A DNA stretch of 63,895 bases, filler included, from Octopus bimaculoides (GCF_001194135.2; 5 parts of 3 records of this genome joined end to end with filler, not necessarily neighbours in it), one strand, 5' to 3'. Shown: positions 6,394 to 15,684, counted from the first letter of the whole stretch. Notes: a model not told the origin generated them from the sequence alone. Made by a program: numbers and translations.

Positions 6394-6569
6394 GTAAGTA
6401 AATATAGGTTAATGATATTAACTCATGCATGTCTGTAGGTAGTTGCCACTGCAATCTTAATGTATGTATCTGCGTGTAGATGACCAGTATTTAATTGTTT
6501 AAGCTAATCTTTTTCATAACTCTTTAATTTTCACTATATGTGTGCGTGAGTGTGTGGGCGCGCACGTAT

Positions 6570-6968
6570 TCTTTTATTCTTTTACTTGCTTCAGTGATTT
6601 TACTGCGGCCATGCTGGAACACCGCCTTGAAGAGATTATTAGTCAAACAAATCAACCAGATGACTTATTTTTTAAAGCCTAGTACTTATTCTATCGGCTT
6701 CCACTGGCGAACCGCTAGGTTACGGGAACGGAAACACATCAGCACCTGTTGTCAAGCGGTGATGGGGGACAAACCTAACACTAAGATAAACACACGTAGA
6801 TATATACAAATTTGTGACGGGATTCTTTCAGTTTCCATCTACGAAATCCTCACAAGGGTTTGGTCGGCCCTAAGGCTATAGTAGAGGACACTCGCTCAAG
6901 GTACCACGCAGTGGGACTGAACCCAGAACTATGTGACTAGGAAGCAAAATTCTTATCACATGGCCACA
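6570..6968 (-). mobile_element. tRNA-derived octopus-type SINE
   Basis: Reverse complement has a tRNA-like head (GGGTTCAGTCCC B box), a CORE-like ccttgagcgagtgtc segment and a tail ending gcggtgttccagcatggccgcag. Homologous to 7705-8112. Confidence 0.85.
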
Positions 6969-7399
6969 CCTCTGCTTATATATAAATGTGTGTGTGTGTG
7001 TGTGTGTGTGTGTGTGTGTGTGTGTGTGTGTGTGTGTGTGTGTGTGTGTGTGTGTGTGTGTGTGTGTGTGTGTGTGTGTGTGTGTGTGTGCGTGTGTGTG
7101 TGTGTGAGCGTGTTCAGTATTTAATCATTTAAATCCTTCCCCTGAAAAAAGATACAATGCTCCAACCTCCATCTTCGGAATGTAGATAACGAAAACAATG
7201 TCACATTTTAAACCTCAAAAATGTCTTGCATAGTTTTACTGTACCAATACAGTGTATTTGTAATGTGCGAATCTGTTAGCTAATTTCTTTCACAAAAAAA
7301 TCCAAGCTTATCCAAACTGACAGTAGGCATTTACTTACAAAACCAAGATTTTCAATAGTTATTGGTACAAATGTAAATTTGTAATCCGGCTATAAAAGC

Positions 7400-7700
7400 C
7401 GGAGGTTTCGAAGCAGTTGTCTGTAGGTATTTTCCTGCTCTTTAATTTCTAGAGATATTCCCATCAGCAGAACAGCTGGCCTCTATGACGGTACATAGTT
7501 TTTCTTGTCTATCCCAAACAATATCCGGGCTGTTATATTTACACTCGACAGATGATTTGATGGGAATGTTCCACCAGTATTCCTTGTGCTGGTATTCGTT
7601 TACGTATTCAATAACATGCACAACATTCAATAACGATTCAATAGCCGTTCTCTGTATTCATTCCAGGACAGTCTTTTTTCCGAATAGCATTCTCTTTACT
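7400..7700 (-). mobile_element. RLE-type (R4/Dong-like) LINE fragment, endonuclease region
   Basis: Translation YWWNIPIKSSVECKYNSPDIVWDRQEKLCTVIEASCSADGNIS matches the PD..D/E restriction-like endonuclease motif. Confidence 0.7.
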
Positions 7701-7704
7701 CTTT

Positions 7705-8112
7705 TATTTATTTCAGTCATTTGACTGCGGCCATGCTGGAGCACCGCCTTTAGTTGAGTAAATCGACCTCAGGACTTATTCTTTGTAAGCCTAGTACTTA
7801 TTGTATCGGCCTCTTTTGCCGAACCGCTAAGTTACGGGGACGTAAACACACCACAATCGGTTGTCAAGCGATGGTGGGGGACAAACACAGACACACAAAC
7901 ATATACACACACACACACATATATATATATATATATATATACATATATACGACGGACTTCCTTCAGTTTCCATCTACCAAATCCACTCACAAGGTATTGG
8001 TCGGCCCGAGGCTATAGTAGAAGACACTTGCCCGAGGTGCCACGCAGTGAGAATGAACCCGGAACCATGTGGTCGGTAAGCAAGCTACTTACCACACAGC
8101 CACTCCTGCGCC
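7705..8112 (-). mobile_element. tRNA-derived octopus-type SINE, well-preserved copy
   Basis: Head gcaggagtggctgtgtggtaagtagc...ccgggttcattctc, internal (CA/TA)n, tail as in 6570-6968. Confidence 0.9.
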
Positions 8113-12410: not shown

Positions 12411-12999
12411 TATAAATGTGAATTTCAAACTCTGACAGTTAGTATTAATTGGTCAGATACATACACGCATACACCGACTCACACATATATTCTCACACAT
12501 AAACCTATTTATATATGCCCATACTCACATATACATGCACTCACACATACATACATATGCATAGGATCTCGTACATACGACTACATACATTATATATACA
12601 TACATTATATATATATATATATATATATATATATATATATATATATAAGTTCAAAAAAACAATAACAAAAAAACAAAAAAACAACAAAGTGAGGACGTGA
12701 TATGGATAGTGTTATTNNNNNNNNNNNNNNNNNNNNNNNNNNNNNNNNNNNNNNNNNNNNNNNNNNNNNNNNNNNNNNNNNNNNNNNNNNNNNNNNNNNN
12801 NNNNNNNNNNNNNNNNNNNNNNNNNNNNNNNNNNNNNNNNNNNNNNNNNNNNNNNNNNNNNNNNNNNNNNNNNNNNNNNNNNNNNNNNNNNNNNNNNNNN
12901 NNNNNNNNNNNNNNNNNNNNNNNNNNNNNNNNNNNNNNNNNNNNNNNNNNNNNNNNNNNNNNNNNNNNNTATATATATATATATATATGAAGTGAGAAC

Positions 13000-13830
13000 G
13001 GCCGGTTTATGGGATTAAGTTAGGTCTCCCGTCCATAAATGGTTTAGCTTTATGACGTATTGTCAGATCCCTAAACTTGTTGATCCAAGACCACTTTAAA
13101 ATATGGAGGAGAAAGGCCTTAATACACTAAGATAACAACTGCGGGTTATCTCCCTTTGCTATTGGCTATCGACTTCCGGCTGTGCTGCTAGCTTGTGGGC
13201 TCCAAAAAGCTGGCAGGAACCTCCTGAAATGTAAGTATGGCCCGAAAATCTCCGTTCTGGAGTAAGGGATGTTCTCTGGTTTGAGTGAGTCCTTTAAAAT
13301 ACTCGCCCGTTCAGTTATGCATGACTTGCAACAATCGGTTCTCGAGGATTTTCTATAAGATTGAGAATAGAATATAATCGTTTCTGTCTTATGCATACGT
13401 GACTGGCCACTGATGTTACGGATTTCCTTTCCGAAACTCTGATGGAGGACTTGTAGTTTGAGAAACGTTGCTTGAGTTCGCGGAACGTCGAATGTATCTC
13501 CGTGAGCGTGTGTTTGCGCTGTGTCTGTATCTGCCGGCGTTGTTATTGTCGCTGTCACCGACATTGTTTCCAGAGTTTACGTCCTGGTAGAACAATTAAT
13601 AGATATTTTACAAACCATGTAGACAATGTTCCCTTCATCACGTTCTTGACAAACGTTGGCCAAAATTTTCCTGTGTAGATGTAAAGACTCAAAGCTAATA
13701 CAACCTGGCTTGAATATAATGACACCAGTGGATTCATATAAAGCTAGAAGAGTAGCGGAAAGGGCAGGACATACCTTCGTCCGTGAGAGCATCCATTACA
13801 ACCGTTGGAAAAAAGCATCAACTAAATAAC
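13000..13830 (-). mobile_element. Decayed Penelope-like RT/GIY-YIG fragment
   Basis: RTKVCPALSATLLALYE resembles the PLE GTKxAPxYAxL motif. Many stops. Confidence 0.5.
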
Positions 13831-13839
13831 GAAATCAAA

Positions 13840-14447
13840 CAGAGTTTATCTTCCATTACTTAGGAAAATAACCACACGGGATGATATTGATAAATCGGGT
13901 ATATTTGATCATGTATGGAAAAATGGAGACCATCTCCACCTGTGGTATGAAGTTAAAATAATAGACAGAGAACACCACTGGAAAATATGAAAACTAAAAG
14001 AAGCAGCACATATGCTAGGACACAACAACCTCCTAAGCAGACCGAGTGCAGATATGAGCAGCACATCTGCACTCAGTCTACCTCCGGTATTAAGGAAGGA
14101 CAGGAGAATATTAGATTTATAAGCCCTAAAATTCACTCGAGGGATATGGTGTAGTGGTTAAGAGAGCTGGTACTAACCCCAAGTTGCCGAGCTCGATTCC
14201 AGCTAGTGACCTCAATTATAATAATAATAATAATAATAATAATAATAACAACAATAATAATAATAACAACAACAACATCGAAAAATACCTTAGGAATGAG
14301 AACCTAGGTTCGAAATTTCCCCCATACCTGATGAAGGCTGGAGGGTATATCAGCCGAAACGTTGTGTTAACAACAAACAAGATGAAGGCAAATATCCGTA
14401 AAATGTTAATAATGTGCATAATTCCTCATCTCTTAAATATTGAACTA
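13840..14447 (+). mobile_element. Penelope-like 3' end: GIY-YIG C-terminus, tRNA-like A/B boxes, (AAT)n, hammerhead, tail
   Basis: KSGIFDHVWKNGDHLHLWYEVKIIDREHHWK.KLKEAAHMLGHNNLLSRPS. A box TGGTGTAGTGG at 14147-14157, B-box-like GCTCGATTCC at 14191-14200. Tail homologous to 44465-44585 (+) and 43532-43634 (-). Confidence 0.8.
14323..14368 (+). ncRNA. Minimal type I hammerhead ribozyme
   Basis: CUGAUGA (14328-14334), extra A, stem II GGCUG/CAGCC, GAAA (14356-14359), palindromic AACGUU stem III, site GUU at 14363, short stem I AUAC/GUGU. Confidence 0.75.
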
Positions 14448-15684
14448 TATACACACATATATATATGCATTAATGCACACACACATATACGCACACATGT
14501 ATATTATTAAAGAAGATAAATACGCTATATCTTCATATATACCACATTATTCATTCACTCACATACATATACATCACACCTTTAACGTTAAGACTAAGTG
14601 CTTCCCAATTGGGGATGCCCGCAAAATAAAAAAAATAAAAAAAAGATTTTCTTGCTGAAAATTAGGGACGAGAGCAAATAAAGAACAAAAGAAACAAAAC
14701 GAACAGTCGAGCAAAATACGCCCTTGGGGGTCAAGGAGACGAGAATAGTGGGTAACGTTTAGAAAATATCTTGAAGGACGGAGGACGGAGAAACAGAATT
14801 TGCGACTGGTCAGCTACGGAACCAGCATAAGAAAGGAAGGAAAAGGGGAACATTTGTTGTCATTTATCAAGGAATGGAACGCAACACACACCGAATTTTT
14901 ATTAACAAGTTTTTTATATACCCATGTGACTCTCTCTTGCCTTCATTTTTTCTCCTTTTCTTTCTCTCACCCTCTGACTTCTATTCCAGTCTTTCTACTT
15001 ACTCCTTTTCTCTCCCCGCCTCTTGTATTTGTAGCCTTTATCCTTCCCCTTCGTCCCCATTCCCTTTTGTTTTCTGTTACTCTGTCTTCTTGCTACTTTT
15101 CTCCTCTGCCTGCTGCTGTTACGTGACCAGCGGCCAATTCCCATTTTTCTTCCTTTCTTACACTGGTCCCCTAGCTGACCAGTCTCAAATTCTCTGCCAT
15201 TCAAGCATCATCCACATGAAAAATAAACACCTCACTCCTCGCTTTCATTAACGGAGGAAGTATCTAAAAGAATGTTGTAATGTTAATATAGTTATCTGCA
15301 TATCTTAGGTGAGCATTTTCAATTCGTTCAAAACCAAGTCCCCTTCATGCTACTAAAAATCATTTAGACGTTTGTTTACTTATGAACTCAAACATTTTAC
15401 TTCTTAATTTTGCTTCGTTTTCTGTTTCTTTGCCTAGAGCATATTTTGACTGCCTTATCAATGAACTCAATAACAAATGTGTTTTAAATATATATTTGCA
15501 TCTTATTTTCTTTCTACAACATCTGGCTTAACTCTTTATCATTCATTGAATACACTATTGTGAGACTCAGTGGTATAGATTCTCATAAATTGCCTTATAT
15601 TTCTGAATGATTAATTATTGTTAAGTTTCTTTATCTGGATGTAATATGATATAATTCGTTACTTTAATATTCTCTTTTTAACAG

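Follow-up and report, generated by a model that had tools for sequence, protein, structure and literature searches.

The stretch of Octopus bimaculoides DNA analysed here (GCF_001194135.2; 63,895 nucleotides in all, five parts of three records joined end to end with filler, referred to below as the window) carries a gene for an IL-17-like protein, in which a tiny first coding exon is separated by a long intron from a second coding exon that encodes the IL17 domain. Within this intron, on the same strand as the gene, lies a hammerhead ribozyme motif, and the original prediction for the locus was that this motif could cut nascent IL-17 transcripts and thereby tune cytokine output. We find that the motif is, by its sequence and its relatives, the minimal hammerhead (min-HHR) of a decayed, 5'-truncated Penelope-like element (PLE), and a new cephalopod copy of such a hammerhead. 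The best explanation of the whole, to which we give a probability of about 0.85, is a lone PLE min-HHR fossil in the intron with no dedicated role in IL-17 expression. The features are listed in Table 1.

The gene model was derived from an open reading frame (ORF) at 15781-16197, which was extended 5' to the AG at 15684 and joined to 6379-6393 to give a 175-aa protein with a Pfam match to IL17 (PF06083; residues 91-165, E 5.5e-15; 56 bits, cut-off 24). Along its full length, this protein shares 88% identity with Octopus sinensis LOC115213518 (P0001), and along 81% of its length it shares 88% identity with an Octopus vulgaris protein named "interleukin 17" (P0002). The N-termini of both read MKITT-I(V/I)AQIV, as expected from the same tiny first exon. 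At the O. sinensis chromosomal locus (L001), splicing 10001-10015 to 14687-15208 gives P0001 exactly, with donor GTAAGTAAAT and a CAG acceptor, and the flank of exon 1 (window 5794-6406) is 90.6% identical to L001 9413-10028, at the start of the annotated coding sequence. Since the annotated proteins of both species start with MKITT, the exon 1 and the intron that had been proposed for this gene are supported, and the two-exon model as a whole is supported by comparison with orthologue annotation. A scan of 14370-15684 for an alternative first exon (an ATG with an in-phase GT) returned poor donors only, no homologous candidates and nothing credible, and the possibility that the true exon 1 lies downstream of 14370 was therefore set aside. 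The intron is 9.3 kb long here versus 4.67 kb in O. sinensis, and against the O. sinensis intron only its two ends and copies of a short interspersed element (SINE)-like repeat can be aligned.

Two features of the annotation in the other species deserve mention. The O. vulgaris protein P0002 (210 aa) leaves IL-17 similarity after residue ~141, and its tail (…KKQADTAKKILERLSEFKSKIF…) matches a transposase-like ORF located 3' of the IL-17 gene (window 17538-17960), so that its gene model looks chimeric. The O. sinensis annotation also places a second IL17-domain gene (177 aa) on the minus strand of L001 1-25208, with a span that covers the whole 25-kb locus. In O. sinensis, the orthologue of the gene studied here thus appears, from the annotated coordinates, to lie within an intron of this second, opposite-strand IL-17 gene.

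Upstream of the hammerhead, the plus strand encodes a degraded frame whose translation runs ...DKSGIFDHVWKNGDHLHLWYEVKIIDREHHWKI, a stop, then KLKEAAHMLGHNNLLSRPSADM..., and which by eye may reach 5' to ~13640. A protein search with this remnant recovered octopus proteins (P0003, P0004, and P0005) and others that are 63-75% identical to it and carry the GIY-YIG signature IYSIPCSCGRLYKGETCRPLK..EH, and one of the 545 relatives recovered with a profile is named a GIY-YIG superfamily endonuclease by its source. When endonuclease proteins from three related PLE loci (L004, L005, and L008) were used as tblastn queries, they mapped the remnant to 13841-14104 with E values of 1e-21 to 1e-23; a Pfam search of the degraded translation gave no match. 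No reverse transcriptase was detected in the window by tblastn with the reverse transcriptase proteins of related PLEs, and the copy is therefore taken to be 5'-truncated. The stop of the endonuclease frame and the start of the hammerhead are 208 nt apart on the same strand. Thus, with the hammerhead ~210 nt 3' of a same-strand endonuclease frame, the motif sits in the 3' region of a 5'-truncated PLE. Minus-strand ORFs at 13166-13564, 13577-13792, and 13909-14136 have no Pfam match and were regarded as spurious once the plus-strand endonuclease frame was recognised.

Part of the 3' untranslated region (UTR) of the element (window 14130-14275, corresponding to 10415-10510 of the O. vulgaris paralogous locus L003) comprises a tRNA-derived-looking stretch (TGGTGTAGTGGTTAAGAG ... 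GAGCTCGATTCCAGC) and, 3' of it, an (AAT/AAC)n tract. ARAGORN called no tRNA in the window or in four loci, and the tRNA-like look of 14130-14205 is an impression only. A (CA/TA)n microsatellite lies directly 3' of the element both in the window and in L001. The flanking repeats known from PLEs as pseudo-long terminal repeats (pLTRs) are not definable from the truncated window copy.

Table 1. Features of the IL-17-like gene, its first intron and the PLE remnant in the window (cut and splice positions are given as the two bases on either side)
Feature	Coordinates	Strand	Basis or remarks
IL-17-like coding exon 1 (MKITT; ATGAAGATAACTACA)	6379-6393	+	donor GTAAGT at 6394
Intron 1, ~9.3 kb as assembled	6394-15684	+	two assembly gaps; mostly lineage-specific transposon sequence
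Assembly artefact, 172-bp block flanking 10-N gap (9286-9295)	9114-9467		self-BLAST
Decayed C-terminal part of PLE GIY-YIG endonuclease frame	13841-14104	+	in-frame stops; translation, tblastn
PLE 3' UTR: tRNA-like-looking segment (~14130-14205) and (AAT/AAC)n tract	14105-14322	+	both common to O. vulgaris paralogue L003
Minimal hammerhead (min-HHR)	14323-14368	+	predicted cut 14363/14364; family alignments, pair counts, covariance model
Helix I	14324-14327 / 14364-14367	+	4 bp: C-G, A-U, U.G, A-U
C3-A9 core CUGAUGA (CTGATGA in DNA)	14328-14334	+	
Extra nucleotide A after A9	14335	+	unpaired
Helix II GGCUGG/UCAGCC	14336-14341 / 14350-14355	+	6 bp: five Watson-Crick and one G.U; 8-nt loop
G12-A15.1 GAAA	14356-14359	+	
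Palindrome ACGU (A15.1-C-G-U16.1)	14359-14362	+	in place of helix III hairpin, no loop
C15.2, G16.2, U16.1, U17	14360-14363	+	cut directly after U17
PLE 3' terminal segment past cut site, then (CA/TA)n microsatellite	14364-14445	+	82 bp
IL-17-like coding exon 2, 170 codons and stop, IL17 cystine-knot domain	15685-16197	+	ORF; Pfam PF06083

The hammerhead itself had been predicted at 14323-14368, on the strand of the IL-17 gene and about 1.3 kb 5' of the exon 2 acceptor, and we confirm its coordinates, strand, and distance (1321 nt from the cut to the acceptor at 15684/15685). A 5'-OH end had been anticipated at 14364, in agreement with the cut site that is predicted here from the numbering of the core. 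The short stem I and dimer-type stem III of the prediction are also borne out, as helix I has 4 bp, one of them G.U, and an ACGU palindrome stands where a helix III hairpin would be. Such a dimer-type helix III ought to make cleavage in cis weak, as predicted from the architecture of the motif. A canonical helix III formed by GUUGU (14361-14365) and ACAAC (14370-14374) was considered and rejected, because it does not close with A15.1-U16.1 and competes with helix I.

A bare pattern of the type CTGATGA-N(6-36)-GAAAC is expected 0.11 times per window and was present in 11 of 100 shuffled sequences. The Rfam hammerhead models (Hammerhead_1, Hammerhead_3, HH9, HH10, and HH II) gave no match at the gathering score over positions 1-29244, nor did they at E<=10 over 13000-15700. 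The same models also miss the more intact PLE copies in L004 and L005, and the Rfam negative is therefore uninformative for minimal hammerheads. With the two-box pattern not rare and Rfam silent, the case for a real hammerhead rests on homology. Other candidate cores did not withstand inspection. A second hammerhead-like core on the plus strand at 19655-19691 (CTGACGA...GAAAC...GTC) lacks a helix I, can self-pair as GACUGAC/GUCAGUC and is probably a plain hairpin, and CTGACGA...GAAAC matches at L001 20158 and at position 19836 of the orthologous O. vulgaris locus (L002) have no helix II and were treated as chance. On the minus strand, weak Rfam E-value matches at 14440-14510 (mir-297, mir-3149, etc.) are hairpins of the (CA/TA)n microsatellite, far below gathering scores.

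The homology comes from 12 other copies that carry the motif in the same register. An O. vulgaris locus on a different chromosome (L003) holds two paralogous PLE copies: the first aligns continuously with window 13874-14413, through endonuclease, 3' UTR, (AAT)n, hammerhead, and tail, at 75.6% identity, and the second, which is inverted, aligns over window 14220-14445 at 87% identity. Loci L004-L008, from the European Nucleotide Archive (ENA) assembly ERZ21867824, belong to a more distant PLE family with endonucleases 59-70% identical. In L004, L005, L006, and L008, ORFs that match RVT_1 are followed by the endonuclease and then by the same hammerhead, and the distance from the endonuclease ORF to the hammerhead is about 260-360 nt in L004, L005, and L008. 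Outside the endonuclease, DNA similarity between the two families is found only in the hammerhead and the start of the tail (79.5% over 88 nt). A related endonuclease on a Joint Genome Institute (JGI) contig (L009) could not be used, as this contig ends before any hammerhead could appear, and no exact match to the hammerhead pattern of the family was present in the metagenome collection (0 matches).

We aligned 13 related copies from these two diverged families, the window copy included. The core is intact in eight of the 13, that of the window among them, and no core position is preserved in fewer than 11. All 13 have the extra A after A9, and the G10.1-C11.1 pair (G14336-C14355 in the window) is G-C in 10 copies and G-U in two. 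Helix II pairs in 94.9% of cells and shows compensatory double changes at two of its pairs, C-G to U-A in three copies and G-C to A-U in two. Over all helices, 80.4% of cells are paired, versus 11-41% after shifting the 3' partners by 1-3 columns, and the covariation score was reached by nine of 500 shuffles. Helix I is less well kept (63% of cells paired overall, with only the three inner pairs well preserved), and the ACGU palindrome has decayed to ACAU in some copies. Because the sample is small and the copies are related, this covariation is supporting evidence for the hammerhead fold and not statistical proof.

The same alignment contradicts the idea that AT-rich intron sequence matches the hammerhead consensus here by chance. 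The frequency of the bare pattern in shuffled sequences and the silence of the Rfam models would favour chance. On the other side stand the recurrence of the motif in one register 3' of PLE endonuclease genes in 12 other copies and two diverged families, a core that is largely kept together with compensatory changes in helix II, and the fact that Rfam misses the family copies too; we consider the probability of a chance match negligible.

The anatomy of the window copy agrees closely with the minimal hammerheads that have been described from metazoan PLEs. These have no helix III, are palindromic at 15.2/16.2, carry a nucleotide between 9 and 10.1, have a G10.1-C11.1 pair and a helix I of 4-5 bp, and are found flanking PLEs or at their 3' side, mostly as single motifs in truncated elements (Cervera and De la Pena, 2014, PMC4209133). 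In the window copy, the C3UGANGA9, G12AAA15.1, and U16.1-H17 (14362-14363) boxes are all present, as are the ACGU palindrome in place of helix III, the extra nucleotide after A9, the G10.1-C11.1 pair, and a 4-bp helix I, and the motif is single, in a truncated element, and 3' of a GIY-YIG remnant (the reverse transcriptase being present in family copies only). One difference is the length of helix II, which is 5-6 bp in the octopus family versus 7-8 bp in the Schistosoma min-HHR families. Our literature search found no specific description of a cephalopod host of PLE minimal hammerheads.

Other hammerhead-bearing elements share some of these features. Craig et al. (PMC8557442) described hammerheads near PLE 3' ends within pLTRs, as well as inverted truncated copies, a short terminal tail, and insertion at microsatellites; the octopus elements are similar in having an inverted tail copy (L003 9970-10048), a short tail, and (CA/TA)n after the element in the window and in L001. 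The Poseidon PLE of Anolis carolinensis (PAc) likewise bears a hammerhead and a short terminal extension beyond its main body (Frangieh et al., 2024, PMC11167929). However, the PAc hammerhead overlaps the start of the ORF and needs protein for cleavage, while that of the window is found ~210 nt 3' of the endonuclease stop, with 82 nt left to the 3' end of the element. Animal non-LTR retrozymes and the satellite and SINE hammerheads of newts and Schistosoma resemble the window motif in being type I hammerheads whose helix III is weak and palindromic; they act as dimers and are related to PLE pLTRs. In contrast to their tandem short non-coding units, the window holds one copy on the remnant of an endonuclease gene, with no tandem repeat.

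The intron is interrupted by two assembly gaps. The two blocks that flank the 10-N gap (9114-9285 and 9296-9467) are 100% identical by self-BLAST, and this gap is an unmerged overlap of contig ends that has left an artificial duplication in the assembly. From these identical 172-bp flanks it follows that the sequence is continuous here and that the intron is ~182 bp shorter than written. The other gap (253 Ns at 12717-12969) has (TA)n on either side and is surrounded by sequence without counterpart in the other species. The sole backing for order and orientation across both gaps is that the flanks of exons 1 and 2 are collinear with the chromosome-level loci in O. sinensis and O. vulgaris. Downstream of both gaps, the hammerhead and exon 2 share one gap-free stretch.

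We then examined how likely the intronic copy is to cleave the IL-17 pre-mRNA. A covariance model built from 11 family copies, including that of the window, and run with filters off, has a single match in the sequenced 29 kb, the copy at 14323-14368 itself (74.5 bits, which it owes partly to the construction of the model); the next-best match scores 13.8 bits (E 0.31). Thus, no second hammerhead copy or dimer partner was found in these 29 kb, of which the 253-N gap is unread, and self-BLAST detected no further copy of 12990-15684 within the window. For 14318-14375, the structure of lowest energy (-15.2 kcal/mol) is not a hammerhead, and the hammerhead-compatible fold has only -9.4 kcal/mol. 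In the minimum-energy fold, the C-tract is paired with GGAGGG of the loop and helix II, and the 3' strand of helix I is locked in a GUUGU/ACAAC hairpin; in the ensemble, pair probabilities are ~0.0005 for helix I and ~0.05 for helix II. Neither the O. sinensis (L001) nor the O. vulgaris (L002) orthologue of the intron contains the hammerhead core or a match to the covariance model. In related systems, cleavage by single minimal hammerheads is not detectable in vitro and is low for dimers and trimers (PMC4209133), and the PAc hammerhead was cleaved only with the protein of the element, RNA-seq showing no ends at the cut site (PMC11167929).

These observations can be accommodated by a simple scenario. 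A 5'-truncated PLE copy, made up of the last part of the GIY-YIG endonuclease gene together with the 3' UTR, hammerhead, and 82-bp terminal segment, would have inserted in sense orientation into IL-17 intron 1, beside a microsatellite. In the life cycle of PLEs, the hammerhead is thought to process multimeric transcripts, with two hammerheads presumably pairing through the ACGU palindrome to form the missing helix III, probably helped by the protein of the element. The intronic copy would be transcribed with the intron, spliced out, and degraded without measurable self-cleavage. We infer that it is inactive in vivo, and a dedicated IL-17 regulatory role is unlikely.

The boundary of the orthologous sequence is unusual in its position. 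In the introns of both O. sinensis and O. vulgaris, the sequence homologous to the window sets in exactly at 14364 (L001 13008 and L002 12964), which is N1.1, the first base past the predicted cut, and the 82-bp terminal segment (14364-14445) is the only part of the PLE at the orthologous site in these two species. On the 5' side of this breakpoint, these species have a 5'-truncated pol of an LTR retrotransposon (L001 10419-12714; YIDD, RNase H-like, and integrase-like motifs by eye), followed by ~290 bp that end in ...GCACACACCACA at 13007, with a CCACA end. The 82-bp piece is flanked by CA-rich sequence on either side and is 93.9% identical to the L003 paralogue versus 90.2% to the window tail; over 82 bp, these two values do not differ significantly. 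It is possible that the ancestral insertion carried the hammerhead, and that the LTR element later integrated at the breakpoint and a deletion removed its 5' half and the PLE body; a candidate LTR with TGTGG...CCACA ends at L001 12728-13007 is consistent with this sequence of events. It is also possible that the 82-bp piece is an independent retrocopy of the 3' product left by hammerhead cleavage of a PLE RNA, inserted into the same microsatellite, as suggested by its start exactly at N1.1 and by the CA-rich sequence on both sides. We see a slim chance that the orthologous piece is a footprint of in vivo cleavage by the minimal hammerhead, in which case the intronic copy might undergo cleavage in the presence of PLE RNA or protein.

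Conserved intronic hammerheads (HH9 and HH10) and the CPEB3 ribozyme provide precedents for self-cleaving RNAs in introns. Like these amniote hammerheads and the HDV-like ribozyme of CPEB3, the window motif is of a self-cleaving type and lies on the sense strand in the intron of a protein-coding gene. In addition, its core, helix II, and 4-bp helix I are intact, and it is located 5' of exon 2, all of which would suit a ribozyme that cuts the IL-17 pre-mRNA as it is made and has been kept, or co-opted, for the tuning of cytokine output. The precedents, however, are complete monomeric ribozymes at conserved orthologous positions, whereas the window motif is without a helix III, without an Rfam match, and absent from two congeners. 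The proposed cutting of nascent transcripts is unsupported. The motif originates in a transposon of which this is a decayed copy, its core is missing where O. sinensis and O. vulgaris have the orthologous intron, no partner copy was found in the window, and the hammerhead fold is predicted to be unfavourable. The in vitro inactivity of single minimal hammerheads (PMC4209133) also speaks against it. Furthermore, intronic copies of hammerhead-bearing relatives of PLEs are commonplace, with ~43% of Xenopus retrozyme copies overlapping introns (bioRxiv 10.64898/2026.07.22.740005), and we regard a cytokine-tuning function as very improbable. A weaker form of activity can also be envisaged, in which RNA of the family (through an ACGU trans dimer with swapped helix I) or a PLE protein leads to occasional cleavage at times when active PLEs of the family are expressed, at an incidental, non-selected cost to IL-17. 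The intact core and helix II, the related copies in octopus genomes, and the known protein-dependent cleavage of a PLE hammerhead (PMC11167929) are compatible with such activity. On the other hand, all octopus copies seen are decayed, their endonuclease frames having stops or being short fragments, the 4-bp intermolecular helix III and 4-bp helix I are weak, and an active PLE of this family in O. bimaculoides is only an assumption. Residual cleavage of this kind is accordingly judged unlikely.

Several points weigh against the reading that we prefer, that of an inert PLE fossil. The reverse transcriptase is absent here, which leaves the endonuclease remnant and the family copies at other loci as the basis for the assignment to PLEs. 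The 253-N gap could hide a second copy, other PLE transcripts or a PLE protein could act as a partner in trans, and nearest-neighbour folding takes no account of tertiary contacts or of folding during transcription. In addition, both catalytic core and helix II remain fully intact beside a broken endonuclease frame, which is weak evidence: with family relatives that diverge roughly 5-12% from the window copy, the survival of ~13 core positions by chance is not improbable, and the intact core is thus no evidence of selection.

Other repeats are found in and near the intron. A 56-bp inverted repeat (window 14795-14850 and 15138-15193, 87.5% identity) brackets ~290 bp, like the ends of a small miniature inverted-repeat transposable element (MITE), and also occurs in the O. 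sinensis intron (L001 ~13460-13524 and 13820-13875). The abundant SINE-like repeat has two copies in the intron (window 6570-6987 and 7691-8115), at least five both in L001 and in L002, and one or more in L003. By eye only, plus-strand ORFs at window 10239-10944 and 16828-18556 look like remnants of the C-terminus of a long interspersed element (LINE) reverse transcriptase and of a hAT-type transposase, respectively, and a minus-strand ORF at 24823-26021 like a remnant of a pogo/Tigger-type transposase.

For the host gene, comparison with orthologue annotation confirms a two-exon structure of octopus IL-17. For the PLE min-HHR family, the locus adds a cephalopod example, and of the non-coding sequence of these elements, the hammerhead and the beginning of the tail are best conserved between two diverged PLE families. 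It also calls for caution, as a clean sense-strand core in the intron of an immune gene looks regulatory, yet is the standard 3' motif of a PLE fragment, and metazoan genomes can hold thousands of PLE hammerheads, a large fraction of them intronic. Of all these findings, only the position of the orthologous breakpoint, exactly at the cut site, could bear on whether metazoan minimal hammerheads cleave in vivo. If the 82-bp piece in O. sinensis and O. vulgaris did arise as a retrocopy of a cleaved PLE RNA, it would be indirect evidence for in vivo cleavage by this hammerhead family.

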